Below the pieces are notes generated by a model that searched no databases, had not been told where the DNA came from, and saw only the letters and a program-made list of their open reading frames with translations. The position numbers and the translations under genes were made by a program. Shown here one piece after another: positions 395 to 14,007 of a stretch of DNA of 64,000 bases; positions within the stretch are counted from its first letter, which is position 1, and each line of letters starts with the position of its first letter. The DNA lies in assembly GCA_977020255.1 (NCBI GenBank), contig CDROCS010001209.1, forward strand, positions 186,001-250,000, read 5' to 3'. Source of the stretch: Obrimoposthia wandeli (taxonomy: Eukaryota).

Positions 395-2856
395 CAGACA
401 TGACTGACTCACAAAAAGAACAAAAACGGCAGCAGCCCAAACTGTTGTTGAAATGGAGCTGGCGAGAATTGTGGCAAGGTCAGCTTTGGCCGGTGGCTGT
501 TGCACTCACTTTGATTATTGCTTGTGTGTTTGCATTGGCAGCATTAGTTAGTCGGGTTGAGAAGATCATGACAGATCAGGGGCGATCAGTGCTCGCCGCT
601 GATTTAGTGCTGGTTTCTAATAACCCGATAGAGCCGACATTGCTAAGCAAAGCCGAAGCGCTTGGTTTGACGTTTTCAGAGCAAACACGTTTTGGCACGA
701 TGGCATTTAGCGAACAACAAATGCAGCTGATCAGTGTTAAAGCAGTAGAAAGTGACTTCCCATTACGCGGGCAATTGGCGTTACAAAATCTGCAACGTTC
801 ACAAAGCAAAGTTAATCCGGGGGAGCTGTGGTTATCGGAACGTTTATTTTCACTTCTGGATGTTAAACAAGGGGATACTGTTGCGATTGGTGATGCTGAA
901 TTAAGGGTGTCAGGTAAAATAACACAAGAGCCTGAACTGTCGTTTAACCCTTTTAGTCAGATGCCCGCGGTGCTCATTCATGAAAATGATGTTACAGCGA
1001 CAGGGGCGGTCCAACCTGGTGGACGTGTACAGTATCGCCTGTACCTTATGGGCAGTGACGATAAGCTTGCTGCTATTCAAGATTTTGCACCGTTAGAACC
1101 TGGTCAGCGTTGGTTGAGTGAAACGTCACAAGGTCGTACCGGAGAATTTATTGATCGCGCTAGACAATATCTGTCTTTGACGTTAATTCTGGTCATTTTA
1201 ATGGCGACAGCGACTTTGGTACTGACGTGCCAGCATTACACCTCAACCCGCGTTGAAACCGTTGCCATGATGAAAAGCTTGGGGGCGAGTAAGCGATGGT
1301 TATGGCGTTGGTTATCTGGTCAGCTTGCGATGTTATTTGGGCTTTCAGCCATTGCTGGGCTATCGATTGGCTGGGGGCTTGAAGTCTTACTGCGTTTACC
1401 CTTGGCAGATATTTTACCAGATCCATTACCTGAGATGGGAATGTCTCCATTATTAATCAGTATGTTTGTTGCCTTGCTGGTGGCGATCCCTGGGATTGGT
1501 ATTCCTTTAATTCGCTTGCTTGATGCGCCAGCTATTTCAGTGATTCAGCAACAAGCTGATAGGCCGAAAAATAATAAAGCCTACGCCTTATTGTTATTAC
1601 CTGTTGCCGCTGCATTAATTTGGTTTGGCGATAATAAATTAATGTGGATGACCTTAGCGGGTATCGTGGTCGTATTGGTGCTACTCGCCTTCTTTGGCTT
1701 AGTGATTTTATCATTATTACGCAAAAGAACGTGGGGACCAGCCATAACGTTAGCGTTGAGCCGCATAAGTCGCAGCCCATTAACAACAGGGGCTCAATTA
1801 GCGGCACTCACGAGCTCATTAATGCTATTGGCCGTTATTTGGTTATTACGATCCGATTTATTAGCCGATTGGCAGCAAACATTGCCCATTGATGCACCTA
1901 ACGTATTTGCGATTAATATCAGTGCCGAACAGCAGCAAGACTATTTAGCGAAACTCGATCAAGAAAATATTCCTCATTCTGAAGCTTATCCGGTTATTCG
2001 TGGCCGAATAGTCGCAGTGAATGGGGTTGATCTATTGACGCAGGCTGATGATCCCGAGCAGCGTGATGAAGCACTACGTCGTGAGCTAAATTTCACATGG
2101 CGTGAAACCTTGCCTATTCATAATGATGTGCTAGACGGTAATTGGCCAGAACCTGGATTAGCAATAAAAGGGGTGTCAGTTGAATCTGGCATTGCTGAGC
2201 GGTTAGGATTATCGGTAGGTGATGAGCTGGGTTTTAATGTGAATAGTCAGCCATTTTCAGCCACGGTGAATAGTATTCGCCATGTTGAATGGCGAAATAT
2301 GCGACCTAATTTTTATTTTATTTTCACCCCTGATGTCATGACGGATTTACCCGCTACATGGCTTGTCAGTTTTAGAATCGAGTCAAACCAAAATGATGTG
2401 GTAAACCAGCTAGGGCGGGACTACCCAACTGTAAGTTTGATGGATTTACGCACCATGGCATCGCGTATTCAACTGATGCTCCAACAAGTATCTTTATCTT
2501 TATCAGTTTTAGCCGCGCTAGGAGTGATTAGTGGACTATTACTGGTGATGACGCTACTACGCCTGAGTATGGCTCAGCGCCAACAAGAAATTAAATTGTA
2601 TAGAACATTAGGCGCGAGTCGAAAACGTATCTCAGCGACTGTATGGGGCGAATATGGTTTGATGGCATTGATTGCAGGCTTGATGGCTGTTGTCGGTGCT
2701 GAAGCTATTGTTGCTGCGCTGGTAAAGTGGGGATTTGAAATGCCACCACAATGGCACCCAATGTTATGGATAATACTGCCTACCGCTGCGATTGGTTTGG
2801 TTCTATTTATTATTAGCACCATGCTGAAGCAGTTATTACAGCCACTGAAGTCTTAA
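391..2856 (+). CDS. ybbP: ABC transporter permease, duplicated FtsX-type (YbbP)
   Basis: ~820-aa multi-TM protein with two 'K/RxLGAS' FtsX-type motifs; likely ATG at 391 after GGAGG, overlapping the upstream stop. Confidence 0.85.
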
Positions 2857-2865
2857 TGAATCGCA

Positions 2866-2895
2866 ATAAACATCCGTGTATCCGCGGATGTTTAT
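2866..2895. terminator. Hairpin between convergent ybbP and yfcH
   Basis: ATAAACATCCG...CGGATGTTTAT inverted repeat. Confidence 0.6.
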
Positions 2896-2916
2896 ACCCA
2901 AGTTAGTTTGGGTATA
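2893..2916. repeat. Collapsed footprint of the ERIC-like miniature inverted-repeat element (two fused ends)
   Basis: TATACCCAAGTTAGTTTGGGTATA equals the outer parts of both TIRs seen at 60075-60247. Confidence 0.65.
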
Positions 2917-2924
2917 TTTCATTA

Positions 2925-3842
2925 TTAGGTCAGCGTGTTTTTCAGGGCATGCTCTAGTTCGGGGTAACAAAAATGAAAGCCTTGTGATTCCAATTTAGCG
3001 GGTAAAGCACGTTGACCATCGAGCAATAATGAGGCTGATTCCCCTAATCCGATTTTAAGTAACCAAGCTGGTGTGCTTAAAATATGCGGGCGATGTAAAA
3101 CCTTCGCTAAGGTTGTACTGAATTCTTTATTGGTAACGGGGTTTGGAGCGGTGAAGTTAAATGCACCGTGTGCTTGTGGAGTTTTAAGTAAAAATAAAAT
3201 TCCTTTCACCATGTCCTGCAAATGAATCCAAGGGAAATATTGTTGCCCGTCTCCGAGTGGCCCACCAAGCCCTAATTGATAAGCGGGCAGCATTTTTGCT
3301 AATGCACCACCATGTTTAGCGAGCACGATACCGGTGCGTAATAAGCATACCCGCGTTTTATCTGATTGCGCCAGTAAGGCTGTATCTTCCCATTTTGTAC
3401 AGACGGTTTGAGCGAAATCAAGAGGGGAGGAGCTTGCGTCATCCTCGTTTTTTATTTGTAGGCTTTCATCAAATTGATTAGATTTTTGATCACCATAGAT
3501 CCCCACCGCTGAACCACTGATAAATGTATGGGGAGGGTTACTGCTCGCATTTATTTTATCTACGATTGCATCAGTAATTGCCCAGCGGCTTTCACAAATA
3601 ATCTGTTTTTGTTTGTCGCTCCAACGTTTATTAACAATGGGCTCACCCGCAAGATTAATGACCACATCAATATCATTGAAGTCACTGAGTTCTTCGATAG
3701 ATGAGATGGCTTTGATGTGATGCCCTAATCGTTGATAGGCCACTGTTGGGTTACGACTGAGTACGGTTATATGATCATGATTGAAATGCGGCAGCAGTGC
3801 TTTACCTATAAATCCAGTTCCACCTGTTATTAAAATATTCAT
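2925..3842 (-). CDS. yfcH: TIGR01777-family NAD-dependent epimerase/oxidoreductase (YfcH-like)
   Basis: N-terminal GGTGFIG Rossmann motif, NLAGEPI, RTGIVL and WIH motifs. Confidence 0.85.
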   Translation of the reverse strand: MNILITGGTGFIGKALLPHFNHDHITVLSRNPTVAYQRLGHHIKAISSIEELSDFNDIDVVINLAGEPIVNKRWSDKQKQIICESRWAITDAIVDKINASSNPPHTFISGSAVGIYGDQKSNQFDESLQIKNEDDASSSPLDFAQTVCTKWEDTALLAQSDKTRVCLLRTGIVLAKHGGALAKMLPAYQLGLGGPLGDGQQYFPWIHLQDMVKGILFLLKTPQAHGAFNFTAPNPVTNKEFSTTLAKVLHRPHILSTPAWLLKIGLGESASLLLDGQRALPAKLESQGFHFCYPELEHALKNTLT

Positions 3843-3992
3843 GTCAGTGCTTCTCCTTCTGCTACCTGTTCAGATAATACGTCTCTTTTGAGCTATTCGA
3901 TCAAGAAATTATTGCTGAACATAGTGTATAGACACAAGTATTTAGGTGTCAGTCGGTATAAGTATAACCAAGTGTGTTTGCTCAGGAATAAA

Positions 3993-4063
3993 TATCCTTA
4001 AATTCCCTCAAGATGCTCGCTGAAATCGGTCTGAATTCTGCACCATGAAGTGGTTTAGTTATA
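3993..4063. repeat. Degenerate short (71-bp) copy of the ERIC-like miniature inverted-repeat element
   Basis: CCTCAAGATGCTCGCTGA...CTGAAT core shared with the copies at 31263, 51343 and 60075. Confidence 0.65.
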
Positions 4064-4232
4064 CAGGCCTTAGAAATAGCAGAATGAGAAAAAACACTAC
4101 TTTTACAAGGTCTTTTTATTATGAATATTTAATAGTGTGGTGGGCTTCTCGCCTCGAGTAATAAAAGTTGTGTCTAAATATTAATGAGCCATAAATATAG
4201 TAGGTCGAGTTAATATCACAATAAGGAGATGC

Positions 4233-4967
4233 ATGAAATCTATCATGGCATTATTGAAAGCAATGCTCTCTAGTTTTCGTGATTTATTACCGATTATTTT
4301 TGTGATTAGTTTTTTTCAACTGGTGGTATTACAACAGCCGTTACCGCAATGGGGGCCGATATTACTTGGTCTCATTTTTGTTGTAATGGGGCTCACCTTT
4401 TTTATTTTTGGTTTAGAGATGGGATTGTTTCCCATTGGTGAATCAATGGCGAACGCTTTTGCTAAAAAAGGCAGCTTAGCTTGGTTATTAGTCTTCGCTT
4501 TTTGTTTAGGCTTTGGTACCACCATTGCTGAACCCGCATTAACCGCCGTCGCCACAGAGGCCGCAGAAGTCGCAGCAGAAGGAGGCATGATAGATAACAA
4601 TCAAGAAGCGCAATTAGAGTATGCATCTGGCTTACGATTGACCGTCGCCTTTTCTGTCGGGCTAGCCATTATGTTAGGGGTTATTCGTATTCTAAAAGGC
4701 TGGCCAATTCAATGGATGATCGTCGGGGGTTATATACTGGTAATGATCATGACATGGTTTGCTCCACCTAGCATTATCGGTATTGCTTATGATTCTGGGG
4801 GGGTAACGACATCGACCATTACTGTGCCTTTGGTAACCGCTTTAGGCGTGGGCTTAGCCTCGTCAATTAAGGGGCGAAATCCGATGATTGACGGCTTTGG
4901 TTTAATTGCGTTTGCCTCATTAACGCCGATGATTTTTGTCATGGGGTACGGCATGGTGTTGAGCTAA
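4233..4967 (+). CDS. DUF1538 family membrane protein
   Basis: Hydrophobic; [24 protein letters not shown] and [11 protein letters not shown] motifs. Confidence 0.8.
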
Positions 4968-4985
4968 TGAGGATGACCTAAAGAA

Positions 4986-5768
4986 ATGAGTCAATTTGCT
5001 TCAACACTTGTACAATTTTCTGACACCTTAATGATGACGGTGCGCGATGTTGCACCCATAGTAGTGATTATCTTTGGGTTTCAGTTAGCTGTTTTACGCC
5101 GTCCCGTTGCAAATTGGCGCCGTGTTGTCTTGGGGTTTGTTTACGTTATTGTTGGTTTATCGTTGTTTTTAATGGGGTTAGAGCTGGCGTTATTTCCGCT
5201 GGGTGAATCGATGGCCGAGCAACTGACGGCTCCTGAGTTTTTGTATGGTGAAGGCGCAGTCATTCCTTTGGTTATTGACTGGGTAGATTACTATTGGGTG
5301 TATATTTTTGCCGCCGCAATAGGGTTTAGTACCACAGTGGCAGAGCCATCGTTGATTGCGGTTGCGATTAAAGCGAGTCAGGTATCGGGCGGTACAATTA
5401 AAGTAAATGGATTACGTATTGCCGTTGCATTAGGCGTTGCCATGGGTATTTCTTTAGGGAGTTATCGTATTGTGGTGGGTGACCCTTTGCATTATTACAT
5501 TATGGCGGGGTATATCATTGTGGTGATACAGACTTACTTTGCACCTAAATCAATTGTGCCGTTAGCGTATGACTCTGGTGGCGTGACAACATCGACGGTG
5601 ACCGTTCCGATAGTAACTGCATTAGGATTAGGGTTAGCCTCTACGGTTCCGGGGCGTAACCCGATGTTAGATGGTTTTGGTTTGATCGCGTTTGCCAGTT
5701 TATTTCCGATGATCACAGTGATGGGGTATGCCCAATTGTCGGTTTGGCTGGAAAGGAGAGCTGAATAA
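4986..5768 (+). CDS. DUF1538 family membrane protein (paralog of the upstream gene)
   Basis: Same motifs: [35 protein letters not shown]. Confidence 0.8.
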   Translation: MSQFASTLVQFSDTLMMTVRDVAPIVVIIFGFQLAVLRRPVANWRRVVLGFVYVIVGLSLFLMGLELALFPLGESMAEQLTAPEFLYGEGAVIPLVIDWVDYYWVYIFAAAIGFSTTVAEPSLIAVAIKASQVSGGTIKVNGLRIAVALGVAMGISLGSYRIVVGDPLHYYIMAGYIIVVIQTYFAPKSIVPLAYDSGGVTTSTVTVPIVTALGLGLASTVPGRNPMLDGFGLIAFASLFPMITVMGYAQLSVWLERRAE

Positions 5769-6118
5769 TGCGTTTTAAATTGTTAATTGCTTTTGTTGAA
5801 GATTCAAAAACAGATTCTGTACTCGATGCAGCGCGTGATGCTGGGGCGACTGGCGCCACTGTTATTAATAATGCACGTGGAGAAGGGCTGAATAAAAAGA
5901 AAACGTTTTTCGGTCTTACTTTAGAGGTACAGCGTGATGTTATCTTATTTGTGGTTGAAGAGCATTTGGCACGCTCGATTTTAGAGACGATTGAAAAAGT
6001 CGGCGAATTTGATAGTGAGAAAGGGCAAGGTATTGCACTTCAGCTAAATATTGAAGATGTCGTCGGTGTTGCTCACCAAATTGAAGAGTTAACCAAGGTG
6101 GTTGGAGATAAGCTATGA
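5768..6118 (+). CDS. P-II-like small regulatory protein
   Basis: 116 aa; AGATGATVINNARGEG N-terminal pattern and a C-terminal GQGIA resembling the PII B-loop; TAATG coupling to the upstream gene. Confidence 0.7.
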   Translation: MRFKLLIAFVEDSKTDSVLDAARDAGATGATVINNARGEGLNKKKTFFGLTLEVQRDVILFVVEEHLARSILETIEKVGEFDSEKGQGIALQLNIEDVVGVAHQIEELTKVVGDKL

Positions 6119-6664: not shown

Positions 6665-7213
6665 ATGAAATTATTTTTTGCCTCCGATATACATGGTTGC
6701 TACGACAGCGCGAAAAAAGCGATTGCTGCATTTGAGCAAAGCGGAGCTCAGCATTTAATCTTATTAGGCGATGTCTTGAATCCTGGTCCAAGAAATACCG
6801 TTCCTGTAGGTTATGCGCCGACTAAAGTCGCTGATTTATTGAACCAGTTTGGTGACTGTATTACTGCCGTGCGTGGCAACTGCGACAGTGACGTTGATCA
6901 GATGCTACTTGATTTCCCGATGTTAGCTGACTATAACTTAGTGCTATTGCCAAATGGTCGACGTTTATTTTTGACCCATGGCCACTTATATAATGCCGAT
7001 AAACACCCACGCTTAAAAGCGGGTGATGTGATTGTATCGGGTCATACACATATCCCTGTTGCTGAACAAAAAGGGGACCTTGTATTGTTTAACCCTGGCT
7101 CAGTCACCATGCCTCGTGGTGATCATCAAGCAAGCTTCGGTCTGCTGGAAGACAATATCCTTAAGGTGGTTACCTTTGATGGTGATGTGCTTTGTTCTGT
7201 AACACTGAACTAA
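6665..7213 (+). CDS. yfcE: Metallophosphoesterase / phosphodiesterase YfcE
   Basis: SDIHG, LGD, VRGNCD, THGH and GHTH calcineurin-like motifs. Confidence 0.9.
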   Translation: MKLFFASDIHGCYDSAKKAIAAFEQSGAQHLILLGDVLNPGPRNTVPVGYAPTKVADLLNQFGDCITAVRGNCDSDVDQMLLDFPMLADYNLVLLPNGRRLFLTHGHLYNADKHPRLKAGDVIVSGHTHIPVAEQKGDLVLFNPGSVTMPRGDHQASFGLLEDNILKVVTFDGDVLCSVTLN

Positions 7214-7383
7214 TTGCTTGAATCCAGAGTTACTCACTAAAAACGCCAAGATAATTAAGTAACACTAATAAAGTGCCAGAGAGCCCTGAAAGCATGAGTA
7301 ACCAGTAAAATACAAAACCTAATACTTGATCAAACTTAGTTGTATTTTCGAATAAAACCGTTGCATTAGCCTCCATAAATGAA

Positions 7384-8400
7384 CCTGATTACCACTTAAA
7401 TTCCGCCAATTGACTACACTTAAAATGAAATAAAAAGTGAGGCGATCGGCTATTTCAAAAATAAAATTCAAAAAAGTATTTTTAATACATGCTTTTTTAT
7501 TTTCACAACTAGGTACTGAAGAGCAATATCGAAAACGACTGTTTGATATGCGATGGCCTACTGAACCTATGTGAACATTGGGGCTGTGATAAGTATTGTG
7601 GTGGAAATCAAGAAAACTTTATCAATGTAACCAGTGCCATCATCAAGGATCAGTTACGTCTGGCACCTTATTTTCCGCTTCAAAATTGCCATTAAACATA
7701 TGGTTTTAGCTATTTACCTCATAACTCAAGAGAAAAATGGTATTTCTGCATTAGAGCTGTCTCGCCAGCTTGGCATTTCCTATAACGCGGCATGGCGTAT
7801 GAAGCATAAATTGATCAAAACAATGAAAAGAGCGAGATGATAGAAAAACACCATTGAATGGTTACACATTCAACTGGACGATGTTTATTGGGGAGGAGTC
7901 CACCGTGGCACCCGAGGGCGTGGAGCCAAAGGAAAACGTCCTTTCGTTGCCGCAGTATCAATGAACGAAGATGGTCACCCAATTAACATGCGATTTAGTG
8001 TTGTAACAGGTTTTAAAACCAAAGAATTAACGCGTTGGGCGAAAGCGAATCTTGTACCTAAATCTCTCGTTATTTCTGATGGTTTGGCTTGCTTTAAGGG
8101 GGTTAAAAAAGCGGATGTTTTTCACCTAGCTATCGTCACTGGCGGCGGTGCTGATTGGCATTGCGCCTTGTACTTTTCAATGAGTCAACACAATGATTAG
8201 TAATGTGAAAAATTCAATGCCCAGTACTTACCATGCAATAAACAAAAACATTTACCTCGTTATCTCGGAGAATTCTGTTTTAAGTTCAATAGGCGCTTCA
8301 ATCTTGAATAAATGCTCGAACAGCTCATTTACTCAAGTATCCAGACAGCACCGATGCCTGAGCGGTTACTTAAACTGGCTGAGGCTCGGTGGTAATCAGG
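7384..8400 (+). mobile_element. IS1595-family insertion sequence, degenerate (1017 bp)
   Basis: Terminal inverted repeats starting CCTGATTACCAC; 8-bp target duplication TAAATGAA at 7376-7383 and 8401-8408; transposase remnants inside. Confidence 0.9.
7425..8395 (+). pseudogene. IS1595-family DDE transposase with multiple frameshifts and stops
   Basis: Fragments ...KNGISALELSRQLGISYNAAWRMKHKL, DDVYWGG...RGRGAKGKRPFVAAV, SDGLACF and YLGEFCFKFNRRF lie in different frames. Confidence 0.85.
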
Positions 8401-8628
8401 TAAATGAAAGAGGGCTCTTTTCTAATACACGGCTCCATGAACTGGGCAACGCTAATGCTTGTGCAACGTTAATAATATCCCAGCCACTCGCAAATTCTAC
8501 ACCAAGCGCATCTTTTGTTTTTGGGTTCTGTCTTAATTTTCGAACAGTGATTTGCCCAAAAGCAACATATAAGATACATGCAAAAAACATAAAAAGAGCG
8601 ACGATACCTAATAGTTGAGAAAAAACAC

Positions 8629-8943
8629 TTACAGGTCACCTATTGATTTCATTACAGAATCATACCAACTACCACTATTGTTTTTTACAGCATTATTCAT
8701 TCCTATTGAGGCAGCCGCCGCCGTCCCTGCAACAGCAACCCCTCCCACAATTAAACCCACCCAACCAATGGGTGTTGCCACCATTAAAAACATTAGAGCG
8801 GATCCTCCAGCATTAACAACTGCTGTTCCAGTCGCTGCACTTAAAGCAAAACTACTCGATTCAATAAATATCTCTCGCTCCCAGTTACCACCGGCTTTAT
8901 AGCTATTATGAATATTGCCCACACGGCTACCAAAGTCGATAAC
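8629..8943 (-). pseudogene. Orphan C-terminal cassette (tip 4) of the 10571-11548 toxin-like gene
   Basis: VIDFGSRVGNIHNSYKAGGNWERE is identical to the full gene, followed by a variant hydrophobic hairpin; no N-terminal region. Confidence 0.85.
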
Positions 8944-8976
8944 TAGGGTGTATTGATGTTTTAAGGCTTGTAATCG

Positions 8977-9354
8977 CTATTTAGCAAATACACTTAAAGC
9001 ATTTAAAATAACTAATACAAAACCAAAAAAACCAGTTGAAAGCCAACACCAAAAAAAGATGCAACCTAAAATCCGATCAAATTTAGTTGTATGTTTGAAT
9101 ATTAAATTCGAATTGGCATATAAAAAAGAAAGAGGGCTACTTTCAAGTTTTTCACTCCAGCCTTTAGGGAGAGATAATGCTTTGGCCACATTTAAAATAT
9201 CCCAACCACTTACAAATTCATTTCCAAGTGCATTTTTTGTTTTTGGATTTTTTCGTAATTTTCGAACAGTGACTTGCCCAAAAGCAACATATAATATTCC
9301 AGTCACCATTGAGGCAGCGATCATTATTCCAACTAATATTGTTATAATATCCAT
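8977..9354 (-). CDS. Putative immunity protein copy 3 (2-TM membrane protein, intact)
   Basis: 125 aa; shares GQxTVRKLRxNPKTKxxLGxE..SGWDI.NVA with the other copies; TAATG overlap with tip 3. Confidence 0.75.
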   Translation of the reverse strand: MDIITILVGIMIAASMVTGILYVAFGQVTVRKLRKNPKTKNALGNEFVSGWDILNVAKALSLPKGWSEKLESSPLSFLYANSNLIFKHTTKFDRILGCIFFWCWLSTGFFGFVLVILNALSVFAK

Positions 9355-9620
9355 TAATTATATACACTTTTAATTAATGAATCATATGTGTTGCCAGCAT
9401 TACCTTTAATTAGGTTATTCATTCCCAGTGATGCTGATGCTGCAACTCCTGCAATAGCTAAACCACCGACAACAAGTCCCATCCAACCTGCTGGCGTTGC
9501 AAAAACAAGAAGAGCTAAGCCAGCATCAACAACTAAAGTACCAGTAATTGCACTATCAGCAAAACTACTCGATTCAATAAACATCTCTTGCTCCCAGTTT
9601 CCATCGGCTTTATAGCTATT
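9354..9620 (-). pseudogene. Orphan C-terminal cassette (tip 3)
   Basis: NSYKADGNWEQEMFIESSSF...ATPAGWMGLVVGG homologous to the full gene; begins abruptly after copy 2. Confidence 0.85.
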
Positions 9621-9650
9621 TGTTTGCCTTAACAGATTGATAATAAATAT

Positions 9651-10025
9651 CTAATTAGTAAATATTCCTAGCAAATCTAGCAGCATCAAACTAAAAAACA
9701 TTAGACCTGAAACCATCCAACATAAAAAAAACACACCACCTAAAAAGCGATCTAACTTATTTGTATGCTTTAATATGAGGGTTGAATTAGCATACATAAA
9801 AGATAAAGGGCTGTTTTCAAACCTTTTACTCCATGCTCGCGGGAGGGCTATCGCATTAGCTACATTTAATATATCCCAACTACTAACTAACTAACTCACT
9901 ACCCAAAGCCTCTTTTGTTTTAGGATTTTTCCTAAGTTTCCGCACAGTGATTTGCCCAAAAAGTACAAATAGGATGATTGCAAAAAAACCAATAATAGCA
10001 GCTATAGCTAAGAGTAATGAAACAT
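9651..10025 (-). pseudogene. Putative immunity gene copy 2, frameshifted
   Basis: Reconstructs as ...LFVLFGQITVRKLRKNPKTKEALGSELVSSWDILNVA...GIFTN*; one T is missing after the ATG and there is an extra TTAG unit at ~9883-9897. Confidence 0.8.
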
Positions 10026-10027
10026 GA

Positions 10028-10196
10028 TTACTTCAACCAATTCATGATATCGTCATACCACTCACCACTATTGCTCTTAAGCTTATTATTCGTCCAGATA
10101 GATGTACCTGCTGCCGTCCCTGCAACAGCAACCCCTCCCACAATTAAACCCATCCAGCCAAAAGGTGTCGCCACGATTAGAAAGCTTAAAGCAGTT
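10028..10196 (-). pseudogene. Orphan C-terminal cassette (tip 2), shortest
   Basis: RTALSFLIVATPFGWMGLIVGGVAVAGTAAGTSIW...WYDDIMNWLK abuts the stop codon of copy 1. Confidence 0.8.
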
Positions 10197-10574
10197 CTAC
10201 TCACTAAAAACGCCAAGATAATCAAGTAACACTAATAAAGCGCCAGAGAGCCCTGAAAGCATGAGTAACCAATAAAATACAAAACCTAATACTTGATCAA
10301 ATTTCGTTGTGTTTTCAAATAAAACCGTTGCATTAGCATTCATAAATGAAAGAGGGCTCTTTTCTAATACACGGCTCCATGACTTGGGAAACGCTAACGC
10401 TTGTGCAACGTTAATAATATCCCAGCCACTCGCATACTCTACGCCAAGTAGATCTTTTGTTTTTGGGTTCTTTCTTAATTTTCGTACAGTGATTTGTCCA
10501 AATGCAACGAACAATATACCCGTCACCATTGAACTTAAAATTATAATCATAACAATTATTGTAGTCGGCTTCAT
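10197..10574 (-). CDS. Putative cognate immunity protein copy 1 (2-TM membrane protein)
   Basis: 125 aa with N- and C-terminal hydrophobic helices; ATGA overlap with the toxin-like gene. Confidence 0.75.
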   Translation of the reverse strand: MKPTTIIVMIIILSSMVTGILFVAFGQITVRKLRKNPKTKDLLGVEYASGWDIINVAQALAFPKSWSRVLEKSPLSFMNANATVLFENTTKFDQVLGFVFYWLLMLSGLSGALLVLLDYLGVFSE

Positions 10575-11548
10575 AAGCGGCTTAACTCTTTAGTAATAAT
10601 ATCGTAAGCATCACCACTATTATTTTTAATATAGCCATTTATTCCTATAGAAGTTGCAGCAGCCACTCCTGCAACAGCAACCCCTCCTACAATTAAGCCC
10701 ATCCAGCCGATGGGTGTCGCCACCATTAAAAACATTAAAGCAGCCCCGCCGGCCTTGACTGTTGCAGTTCCAGCCATTGCACTAGCAGCGAAACTACTCG
10801 ATTCAATAAACATCTCACGCTCCCAGTTACCACCGGCTTTATAGCTATTATGAATATTGCCCACACGGCTACCAAAGTCGATAACAGCAAGACCATTTCC
10901 TAAGAATTTTGCGTGCTTACTAAATTTAACAATATTGTCGGCTTGAACGGGGGTCATTATGTCTAGTTTTGCAATGCTTCTGCTACTTCTGGCGATACTT
11001 GCGCCTCTATCAAAATTAGCTAGCGGCGTACCACGACTAGATTTAACTTGACTGGATACAACCTTAACTTCGTGTTTAAAGCGATTTTGCATTTTATCAA
11101 ACGCGATTTTGGCTTTTTGTTTAGCGGCGGATTTTAAGGGAGATTTGGTTGTTGTGGCCTGTCGGTATTCCATTAAGGCTGATTGATAGTTTTTAACTGA
11201 GCCAACAAAACCATCCATTCTATTTGCGTAAATACTGGTTGATGCACCCATTAACCCTACATTGTATTCTTGCAGTTGAGCGTTAAGAGATGAAAGCGCA
11301 ATCAGATTGTCACCACCAAAAGACAACGCTAAATTGGTGAGGTTTTGTGAAATAGCTGAATTAGATAATTTTGCCAGTGTAGCCGACCCAATAGCGGGAT
11401 TCCCCCCTTTTAATAAATAAGGTCTCTTCGCGAGAATCATATCAGGATTAGTACAAGTAAGAGATGAAGCTAGCCCTATGTCAATACCGCACTCATTTTT
11501 AAACGCGCTGGCACTAAAAGTGCGATTACATAAAATCATCCTGCTCAT
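10571..11548 (-). CDS. Putative pore-forming toxin/effector with a colicin-like C-terminal hydrophobic hairpin
   Basis: The C-terminal GNW..E..S...A...(Gly/Ala-rich hairpin)...ATPIGWMGLIVGG pattern resembles colicin A/E1 channel domains by eye; no signal peptide; RBS AAGGA upstream. Confidence 0.6.
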   Translation of the reverse strand: MSRMILCNRTFSASAFKNECGIDIGLASSLTCTNPDMILAKRPYLLKGGNPAIGSATLAKLSNSAISQNLTNLALSFGGDNLIALSSLNAQLQEYNVGLMGASTSIYANRMDGFVGSVKNYQSALMEYRQATTTKSPLKSAAKQKAKIAFDKMQNRFKHEVKVVSSQVKSSRGTPLANFDRGASIARSSRSIAKLDIMTPVQADNIVKFSKHAKFLGNGLAVIDFGSRVGNIHNSYKAGGNWEREMFIESSSFAASAMAGTATVKAGGAALMFLMVATPIGWMGLIVGGVAVAGVAAATSIGINGYIKNNSGDAYDIITKELSRL

Positions 11549-11779
11549 TTGCTTTTTAAATTCCTTTTAAAATTTGAGTTATGATTTAGCGGCTTATCTT
11601 ACAATTGAAAGATAAATAGATAAAAATATCAGTTTCAATCTTTGCGATTGAAACCTCTTTTATTCCATTATGGGAAGCGCGTACGAGGGGAAGCATATTG
11701 TTTGATTGTATGGGCAGGAAAGGCTATTAATTTCGTATTTTGGTATGACCCGTTTTTTCGGACTAACCCGTTTTAAAAC

Positions 11780-11813
11780 AAAAAAAACGCCCCTGCATTA
11801 CTGCAAAGGCGTT
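11780..11813 (-). terminator. Rho-independent terminator of pta
   Basis: AACGCC...GGCGTT stem followed by a T tract on the minus strand. Confidence 0.65.
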
Positions 11814-11850
11814 CGATATTGTTTGTTTGTTTAGCTAAGCTAAGCAGTAA

Positions 11851-14007
11851 TTACTTCGCAGCGTCTTCAGTTTGCTGAGCCTGAATCGCAGTTAGTGCTA
11901 CTGTGTATACGATATCGTCTACTAGTGCGCCACGAGAAAGGTCGTTTACCGGCTTACGCATGCCCTGAAGCATAGGACCGATAGAAACTAGGTCAGCTGA
12001 ACGCTGTACCGCTTTGTACGTCGTGTTACCAGTATTTAGGTCTGGGAATACGAATACTGTTGCTTTACCCGCTACAGGAGAATTAGGCGCTTTAGAAGCG
12101 GCTACATTTTCCATAATTGCAGCATCGTACTGTAGAGGACCATCGATGATTAGATCAGGACGTTTCTCTTGAGCAATGCGTGTCGCTTCACGTACTTTAT
12201 CAACATCAGCACCCTTACCAGATGTACCAGTAGAGTATGAAATCATAGCAACGCGAGGTTCGATACCGAATGCTTTTGCAGAATCAGCAGATTGAATCGC
12301 GATTTCAGCAAGTTGCTCAGCATTTGGATCTGGGTTGATTGCACAGTCACCGTATACCAGTACTTGATCAGGCAGAAGCATGAAGAAGATAGAAGATACG
12401 ATAGAAGCATCAGGTGCTGTTTTGATGATTTGGAACGGAGGAACGATCGTGTTTGCTGTGGTGTGAACCGCACCAGAAACAAGACCATCAACTTCACCCG
12501 CTTCAAGCATCATTGTGCCTAGGAAAACAGAATCTTGAAGTTTTTCACGTGCAACAACGTCGGTCATGCCCTTCGCGCCGCGAAGTTCAACAAGACGTTT
12601 AACGTAGTTTTCACGTACAGTTTCAGAATCGATGATTGTAACACCAGCACCTAGTGTAACGCCTTGCTGTTCAGCAACACGTTTGATTTCTTCTGGGTTA
12701 CCAAGAAGAACACACTCAGCAATGCCGCGTTCAGCACAGATTGCAGCAGCTTTAACAGTACGAGGTTCGTCACCTTCAGGAAGAACAACACGCTTAGCGG
12801 CTTTACGCGCTAGCTCTGTTAATTCATAACGGAATGCTGGTGGGCTTAGACGACGCTCTTTAGCAGAGCCTTCAGTTAATGATTCAATCCACTGACCATC
12901 GATGTGGCTAGCCATGTATTCATTAACGAATTCTACACGTTCTTTATCGTCTGCTGGTACTTCAAGGCTGAAGCTCTGAAGATTCAGAGATGTCTGCCAA
13001 GTGTTACCTAGAGCAGTCATTACAGGTAGACCAGTTGCGAATGCACGCTCACAAAGATCCATCACTGGCTTAGGTAGCTCATAGCCGCCAGTAAGAAGAA
13101 GTGCACCGATTTCAACGCCGTTCATTGCTGCAAGACATGCCGCAACGATAACGTCAGGACGGTCTGCAGAAGTGACTAGTAGTGAACCAGGACGGAAGTG
13201 CTCAACCATGTGCGGAATAGAACGCGCACAGAAAGTGATGCTCTTGATACGACGAGTCGCAATCTCACCTTCGTTGATGATTTCAGCATTAAGGTGCGCT
13301 GCAATATCTGTCGAACGTGTTGCAATTAGCTCAGAGCTCCATGGTGCGCAACCAAGTACACGAATAGGGCTAGAGTTGTATACTTGCATTACTTCAACGT
13401 TTAGCGGAATAGTTGTACCGTCTACATCGTCAAAGATTTCAGATAGGTCAGGGCGAGTACGGCCTTCAGCATCTACAGGTGCGTTTAGTTTGTTAACAAT
13501 AACGCCTGAGATTTGCTTGTTTTTAATGCCGCCGAAGTTAGAGCATGCTACTTGGATACGCTCTTTTAGTTGTGCAGGGTTATCAGTACCGTGCGCAATA
13601 ACGAATACGATTTCCGCACCCAGCGTTTTAGCAATTTCATAGTTAATCTGGTTCGCAAATGGGTGTTTGCGAGTAGGTACAAGACCTTCGATTAATGCTA
13701 CTTCAGATTGAGAGGTTGACGCTTTGAAACGCGCTACTATGTCTTCTAGCAGTACATCACTTTGGTCGTTACGAAGAAGCTCTTCGGCACGTGCCATTGT
13801 AAATGGTTCTGCAATTTCCATATCGCTGTTAGCACGGATGATCGTTGTAGTCAGATCCGGCTGCTCACCACCATGACGTGGCTGTGCGATAGGCTTAAAG
13901 AAAGAAACACGAACGCCTTTGCGTTCCATTGCACGTAAAACACCAAGGCTTACGCTTGTTAGACCAACACCAGCGCCAACTGGGATGAGCATAATAGTAC
14001 GGGACAC
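11851..14007 (-). CDS. pta: Phosphate acetyltransferase (long form with DRTGG domain)
   Basis: GVGLTSVS N-terminus; [24 protein letters not shown] and PDLNTGN motifs. Confidence 0.97.

Follow-up and report, generated by a model that had tools for sequence, protein, structure and literature searches.

What kind of genetic system is encoded by a row of related toxin-like gene ends, each followed by a gene for a small membrane protein, is the question raised by a locus on contig CDROCS010001209.1 of the Obrimoposthia wandeli assembly GCA_977020255.1. The locus lies between yfcE and pta within the 64,000 nucleotides analysed here (positions 186,001 to 250,000 of the contig, hereafter the window). 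An earlier note, made from the bare sequence, had read it as a polymorphic toxin array in which a 325 amino acid (aa) open reading frame (ORF) with its partner gene is followed by three silent variant C-terminal tips, each with a partner of its own. We call the full-length toxin-like gene and its product A, and the first partner (partner1, 125 aa) B. The reading that we favour, and hold to be reasonably probable, is that A and B constitute an orphan, pore-forming effector/immunity system with recombining specificity cassettes, probably delivered by a type VI secretion system (T6SS), A being a colicin-like antibacterial membrane toxin.

The array was mapped by ORF listing, sequence reading and mapping with hidden Markov models. 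All parts are on the minus strand unless stated otherwise, and they comprise the following features (TM, transmembrane; IS, insertion sequence):

11609..11638, minus strand: promoter-like site upstream of A, a consensus match only, downstream of the pta terminator (11785-11814)
10571..11548, minus strand: A, full-length toxin-like gene, 325 aa, of a family conserved end to end
10197..10574, minus strand: partner1 (B), presumed cognate immunity gene, 125 aa with two TM segments, ATGA overlap with A
10028..10204, minus strand: tip2, silent, homologous to A residues 266-323 (58 residues)
9651..10025, minus strand: partner2 pseudogene, joined to tip2 via the junction TAATCATG
9354..9623, minus strand: tip3, silent, homologous to A residues 233-322 (90 residues)
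8977..9354, minus strand: partner3, orphan immunity candidate, intact 125 aa, TAATG junction with tip3
8629..8943, minus strand: tip4, silent, homologous to A residues 222-323 (102 residues), TAAGTG junction into partner4
8401..8628, minus strand: 5′ part of partner4, residues 1-77, stopping at the IS insertion
7384..8400, plus strand: degenerate IS1595/ISXO2-type element inside partner4, 1,017 bp
7230..7383, minus strand: 3′ part of partner4, residues 76-125, DNA 94% identical to the end of partner1

This mapping bears out the succession of A, B and three variant tips, each with its own paralog containing two TM segments. The junctions at which a stop codon had been said to overlap or abut a partner start (ATGA, TAATG, TAAGTG and TAATCATG) were all seen, and the measured tip lengths of 58, 90 and 102 homologous residues agree with the announced range of ~55-105. 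The tips are promoterless 3′ ends of A and all correspond to one and the same domain, with 64-78% identity in the alignment. Tip2 is fused directly onto the end of partner1, tip3 has a 3-residue deletion in its hairpin variant, and at the tip4 junction an exact 68-bp repeat (8876-8943, matching 10818-10885 at the same place in A) starts the tip. The earlier note was right that the tips differ in sequence, but they are not different toxins; they represent specificity variants (a TM hairpin plus a 25-aa tail) of one domain. Partner2 and partner4 had been called pseudogenes, and this holds as well. Partner2 is disrupted twice, first by a stop codon in frame after codon 5 and then by a frame change within a ttag repeat near 9886, and partner4 is split by the IS1595-type element. 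The second break in partner2, situated in a short tandem 'ttag' repeat (9880-9900 of the window, minus strand), has the look of slippage. The element in partner4 ends in 12-bp terminal inverted repeats, CCTGATTACCAC, read from the sequence, and is surrounded by an 8-bp target duplication, TTCATTTA (copies at 8401-8408 and 7376-7383). Its transposase is spread over several frames, with a PF12762 match (2e-08) at 7961-8200.

The layout is not a product of chance, since it recurs in unrelated genomes and the four copies in the window, compared in register, are 60-94% identical. Of 83 loci, 12 contain orphan tips and 10 contain surplus partner genes, which supports the proposed polymorphic toxin/immunity locus with displaced orphan modules. 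Tips mostly start at positions corresponding to A residues 187-266, within or beside the most conserved block of the protein. A full gene with its immunity gene, followed by promoterless 3′ ends each with an immunity gene, is also the arrangement of the orphan modules of contact-dependent inhibition (CDI), Rhs, MafB and T6SS auxiliary loci. As in orphan C-terminal toxin/immunity modules, a block of homology is shared at the junction (here the 68-bp repeat) and the content varies between strains. In contrast to these, the tips of 58-102 residues are specificity alleles of the same domain and not unrelated toxin folds, and the carrier is only 325 aa long and lacks a filamentous or Rhs scaffold.

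What, then, is protein A? Searches of A, B and the tips against Pfam, NCBIfam and PADLOC gave no significant match, nor did phmmer find a match of A among PDB sequences. The earlier note could place neither protein in a named family. This still applies to B, whereas A residues ~200-312 can be recognized, at the level of sequence profiles, as distantly related to the colicin pore-forming domain, because three independent lines point there. Firstly, all named neighbours of A in ESM feature space carry PF01024 (0.94; 186-189 shared features). Secondly, hhalign matched a diverse A-family profile to four PF01024 proteins from genomes over A 203-291 with a probability of 90% (E 1.6e-6); a narrower profile gave 41% over A 121-288. 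Thirdly, the diverse profile compared with PDB sequences retrieved colicin B (E 0.0013) and colicin A (0.027), with colicin S4 and pyocin S5 weaker, and all of these alignments cover the 'GNW...E' signature helix together with the hydrophobic hairpin and the final helix.

The protein has a confidently modelled part from residue 1 to ~100, a colicin-like helical part from ~116 to the C-terminus with the hairpin at ~258-300, and a variable tail (301-325); hydrophobic segment prediction marks 268-304. A first AlphaFold2 model had a pLDDT (predicted local distance difference test) of 53. A better one reached 69.6 overall, with values >90 for residues 1-90. It consists of 12 helices and one sheet made of strands 2-7, 44-46, 192-197 and 213-223. 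Since this sheet joins the first two strands with the last two, the modelled N-terminal part may not be a separate domain. In comparisons by shape, Foldseek, the wide VIA-align search and the ESM Atlas returned only generic helical matches and no solved relative, and the AFDB clusters search only unnamed proteins.

A shares with the A-type colicins (A, B, N, S4; PF01024) the 'GNW...E' helix, after which come a hydrophobic hairpin and, close to the C-terminus, a last helix, and A and B share with colicins the adjoining small inner-membrane immunity gene. In the colicin A/Cai pair specificity is carried by intramembrane helices. Unlike colicins, A has no Pfam match, no long translocation and receptor domains and no lysis gene, and the A-B pair is chromosomal, found in marine bacteria, endowed with a two-TM partner lacking a Pfam family, accompanied by silent tips and enriched in T6SS genomes.

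The partners have two hydrophobic segments, 1-30 and 95-124. Nothing in Pfam, NCBIfam or PADLOC matches B significantly; the sole weak hit, TraL (0.0035), is below the cut-off. Its types are discrete in the N-terminal TM segment and the C-terminal one is variable, with ~65 nearly invariant central residues. This centre, within partner residues 25-100, is nearly invariant across orders (F25, Q27, L33, R34, P37, G50, W51, N55, D93 and others), and the central stretch is predicted to be cytoplasmic by the positive-inside rule. Because the centre is conserved across orders, this sequence pattern suggests that it has a role beyond recognizing the variable helices of the toxin.

The variation of A is concentrated in two places, the hydrophobic hairpin and the 25 C-terminal residues. 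Compared with its homologue in a genome resembling Photobacterium profundum SS9 (hereafter SS9-like), A is 92-97% identical over residues 1-257, while the hairpin differs by 14% and the last 25 residues are only 36% identical. Tail and hairpin types are common to different genera, and a second P. profundum protein combines a tip3-type hairpin with the tail of the A protein of the window. The silent sequences are in use in full-length proteins elsewhere: the tip2 tail type is the active tail of P0030, the tip3 tail is close to that of P0032 and the tip4 tail to those of P0049/P0109, and the tip3 hairpin type is used by P0002.

The variable parts of the two proteins change together. By a partial Mantel test on distances among 87 toxin-end/partner pairs, hairpin distance correlates with that of the partner C-terminal TM segment (B86-125; r 0.30, p = 0.001) and tail distance with that of the N-terminal TM segment (B1-30; r 0.29, p = 0.001), whereas hairpin and N-terminal TM segment are not significantly correlated (r 0.03). 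In full-length pairs the covariation persists after control for the N-terminal 220 residues of A. The window obeys the same rule. The C-terminal ends of partner1 and partner4, with 94% DNA identity, accompany similar hairpins; the N-terminal TM segments of the two partners differ, and so do the matching tails. A predicted complex of A186-325 with partner1 lends weak support (median score 0.49, best control 0.00), two of three runs giving ~0.5 with at least 73% of contacts common between runs and a partner pLDDT of at least 65.

Covarying variable parts located in the membrane helices of both proteins, and discrete allelic types, would also be compatible with a non-lethal identity system for kin recognition, in which a delivered A must meet a matching B as in Proteus IdsD/IdsE. 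The colicin-type signature and the hairpin point instead to a pore-former, and arrays of orphan immunity genes fit protection from a toxin; we consider kin recognition very improbable.

The A-B pair belongs to a large unnamed and undescribed family. A word-indexed protein search (best 8,000 candidates scored) yielded at least 556 relatives of A at E ≤ 0.001, those among the matches listed being nearly all 320-325 aa long. At 50% clustering the family comprises 416 representatives; the best 150 of these measure 315-375 aa, and none of the 150 is a fusion of A to a large delivery protein. The family occupies 111 loci in species genomes, mostly of marine Gammaproteobacteria with a few Desulfobacterota and others. 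B has 594 relatives of about 125 aa. In the fetched loci, B lies within 60 bp after the full-length A in 67 of 68 genes, the one exception stopping at a contig edge. Distant subfamilies, viewed as individual loci, retain the pair and at times have four partner paralogs in tandem. In other genera the cassette is found at unrelated sites, often near IS or transposon (Tn) elements, and flanking yfcE/pta genes were not found there. The cysteines at A residues 7, 20 and 32 are nearly invariant across the close family. One metagenomic member of 459 aa (P0309) is an A-B read-through fusion, probably due to a frameshift or an assembly error. A literature search for PBPRA2800 of P. profundum SS9 returned no paper mentioning it.

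How would such a protein reach a rival cell? The earlier note had called the system standalone, with no secretion genes. Within the window this is correct, as neither a CdiA/Rhs scaffold nor an adjacent secretion gene is present, but beyond the window carrier genomes almost always have a T6SS, this bacterium included. TssC is encoded in 29 of 32 carrier genomes, compared with 66 of 301 genomes of a class-level sample (22%; Fisher p 9e-15) and 33 of 121 genomes of similar size in a family-level sample (27%; Fisher p 2e-11). A co-occurrence argument of the same kind was used for Tme (PMC7046647) and Ssp4 (PMC12669606). Sequence identity assigns a T6SS cluster to the window's own bacterium too: one contig of this assembly matches the SS9-like T6SS cluster with 96% identity over 3.9 kb, a value close to the 91-92% found for the A-pta and yfcE stretches in the window's own locus. 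The SS9-like cluster is complete (PpkA, Fha, TssJKLM, PppA, TssA-C, TssE-F, ClpV, Hcp, VgrG and Rhs). An uncharacterized ORF of 325 aa beside vgrG/Rhs in this cluster was considered and proved unrelated to A. By hand count, two full-length TssC-like genes (about 500 and 520 aa) lie side by side in 24 of the 32 carriers, as against ~10 of 300 class-sample genomes. The module may thus be associated with a specific T6SS subtype.

Several observations weigh against a T6SS-delivered pore-former. No TssC match was found in three of the 32 carriers, and the Fisher p values for co-occurrence are not corrected for phylogeny. No gene for VgrG, Hcp, PAAR or an adaptor was found adjoining the cassette in six loci viewed individually or among the families matched by at least two immediate neighbours in 80 genome loci, and A contains no Pfam T6SS domain. 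Neither A nor the tips match PF01024 at E ≤ 1, so that the Pfam model itself does not recognize them, and neither Foldseek against the PDB with both A models nor VIA-align found a colicin fold. The A model has a pLDDT <50 over the hairpin (252-306), or about the last 70 residues, and the predicted complex of A with partner1 is only a weak pass. Finally, B has two TM segments compared with three to four in known immunity proteins of pore-forming colicins. MIX and WHIX motifs were not seen in A by eye, which is not a rigorous test.

The neighbourhood of the cassette was also scanned more broadly, through 148 immediate neighbours in 80 genome loci. The families matched by at least two of these neighbours include no T6SS family; recurrent neighbours are TonB receptors, ABC transporters, aldehyde dehydrogenases and transposases. 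In several loci (L043, L046, L057, L060, L072) a TonB-dependent receptor gene lies immediately upstream. Together with the colicin-like C-terminal region and the standalone pair without an adjacent secretion gene, this is what one would expect if A were a diffusible minimal colicin-like bacteriocin, independent of T6SS, that enters through an outer-membrane receptor by means of its ~100-residue N-terminal part, with B as immunity protein. However, these genomes are rich in TonB receptors, whose presence here could be due to chance, and syntenic relatives are among the neighbouring cases. A lysis or release gene is lacking. The N-terminal part falls far short of the combined length of the translocation and receptor domains of colicins, and the model places it in one sheet with strands 192-223 instead of giving it a domain of its own. 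The strong co-occurrence with T6SS would also be left unexplained, and we think the bacteriocin unlikely. A bolder proposal is that the whole family represents a minimal colicin that needs no other system. In that case the N-terminal ~100 residues, which are confidently folded in the model, would serve as a new module for uptake, perhaps through a TonB-dependent receptor, both target specificity and self-identity would reside entirely in two intramembrane helix pairs that silent cassettes can rewrite, and the T6SS co-occurrence would be ecological and not mechanistic; this appears quite unlikely.

On the other hand, A and B could act inside the producer as a toxin-antitoxin or abortive infection system, A depolarizing the membrane of its own cell on phage attack and B restraining it. 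A weak PADLOC match to LeoBC (1.4e-4), the location of some distant members beside restriction-modification or other defence genes and the proximity of cassettes to IS and Tn elements are in line with such a function. Displaced silent tips with their partners, arrays consisting of partners only and tail/partner covariation across genera are rather signatures of competition between strains, and enrichment in T6SS genomes would be unexpected for a defence system, which makes this explanation an improbable one.

Returning to T6SS delivery, the nearest described analogue of the A-B pair in size, orphan context and marine relatives is Ssp4/Sip4 of Serratia marcescens (EMBO J 2025, PMC12669606). Ssp4 is a helical protein of ~331 aa with one beta sheet, T6SS-dependent and pore-forming, encoded at an orphan locus among housekeeping genes with the small membrane immunity gene Sip4 downstream, and it has homologues in marine orders (PMC12669606). 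The model of A, with its 12 helices and one sheet, resembles it. Sip4 differs from B in having four TM segments (PMC12669606). The Ssp4 homologue list (Dataset EV2, PMC12669606) contains no Photobacterium, Psychromonas, Colwellia, Microbulbifer, Simiduia, Neptunomonas or Bowmanella and no A-family accession, and for Oleiphilus messinensis it names A0A1Y0I3U9, whereas the member of the A superfamily is A0A1Y0I4D1; these look-ups by genus and accession speak indirectly against membership of A in the Ssp4 family. VasX/TpeX, with a MIX motif and a colicin-like TM domain, and Tme/Tmi are comparable with A-B in that these T6SS effectors act from the periplasmic side to disrupt the inner membrane and are countered by membrane immunity proteins. 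VasX/TpeX was rejected as a relative, being ~1,085 aa long with MIX and PH domains and located next to vgrG, none of which is seen for A. Tme carries a DxxK motif before a TM helix and is paired with DUF1240-type immunity proteins of 3-6 TM segments (PMC7046647); the motif and this immunity type are absent from the A and B alignments, and Tme/Tmi was rejected as well. A WHIX effector was rejected for want of WHxxxH in A.

We propose the following model. A would be an antibacterial membrane toxin whose C-terminal half is, on profile evidence, related to colicins; it would be an orphan cargo effector whose delivery most likely depends on the T6SS of the cell, as the co-occurrence suggests. Its hydrophobic hairpin would insert into the inner membrane of a rival and dissipate the potential. 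B would be the cognate inner-membrane immunity protein neutralizing A in the membrane through helix-helix contacts, for which the covariation predicts pairing of the C-terminal TM segment of B with the hairpin and of its N-terminal TM segment with the 25-residue tail. New cassettes of tip and immunity gene would be acquired through recombination within the conserved block that immediately precedes the hairpin and push the old tip and immunity gene downstream. The displaced tip would be silent, while the old immunity gene could remain useful against former kin.

The contents of the yfcE-pta interval differ among Photobacterium relatives, as the earlier note had predicted. In the window the array is flanked by a gene for a YfcE-like phosphoesterase (6665-7213), 17 bp from the end of the array (gap 7214-7229), and by pta (11851-14007). 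Besides A and B, the SS9-like genome has another B gene there, interrupted by a different insertion of ~3.3 kb, and in other Photobacterium relatives the interval contains only a B remnant or no trace of the module (six genomes). The SS9-like locus (L116; G861:C1:3242500-3255037; oriented 2167-5891) has an orphan partner of the N-terminal type of partner4, split near residue 86-89. The ~3.3 kb insertion there has several transposase-like ORFs and differs from the IS of the window. To judge from these sequences, it looks as if the same orphan partner gene was struck independently by IS elements in the window and in the SS9-like relative. In Photobacterium relatives (L113/L114/L116), a 283-aa membrane-protein gene lies between yfcE and the cassette or pta, and it is missing from the window.

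Four Photobacterium species genomes encode yfcE and pta products that share 92-99% identity with those of the contig. The assembly amounts to 1.35 Gb in 6,912 contigs, whereas this contig is Photobacterium, its DNA being about 91-96% identical to the SS9-like genome. By sequence, the contig is that of a bacterial symbiont or contaminant within an assembly of eukaryotic size. TssC matches on at least eight other contigs suggest that the assembly contains several bacterial genomes or several T6SS clusters.

If confirmed, the proposed function would enlarge the small set of pore-forming toxins acting between bacteria by a widespread unnamed family, whose hundreds of sequence clusters come from marine Gammaproteobacteria and from some Desulfobacterota. 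It would also provide an unusually clean model for the recognition of a pore-former by a membrane immunity protein. Specificity appears limited to the hairpin and the 25-residue tail, which covary with two single TM helices in a partner of 125 residues, and natural allele swaps and silent cassettes offer ready-made test pairs. A would then be another orphan effector that remains invisible to gene-neighbourhood screens for T6SS cargo.

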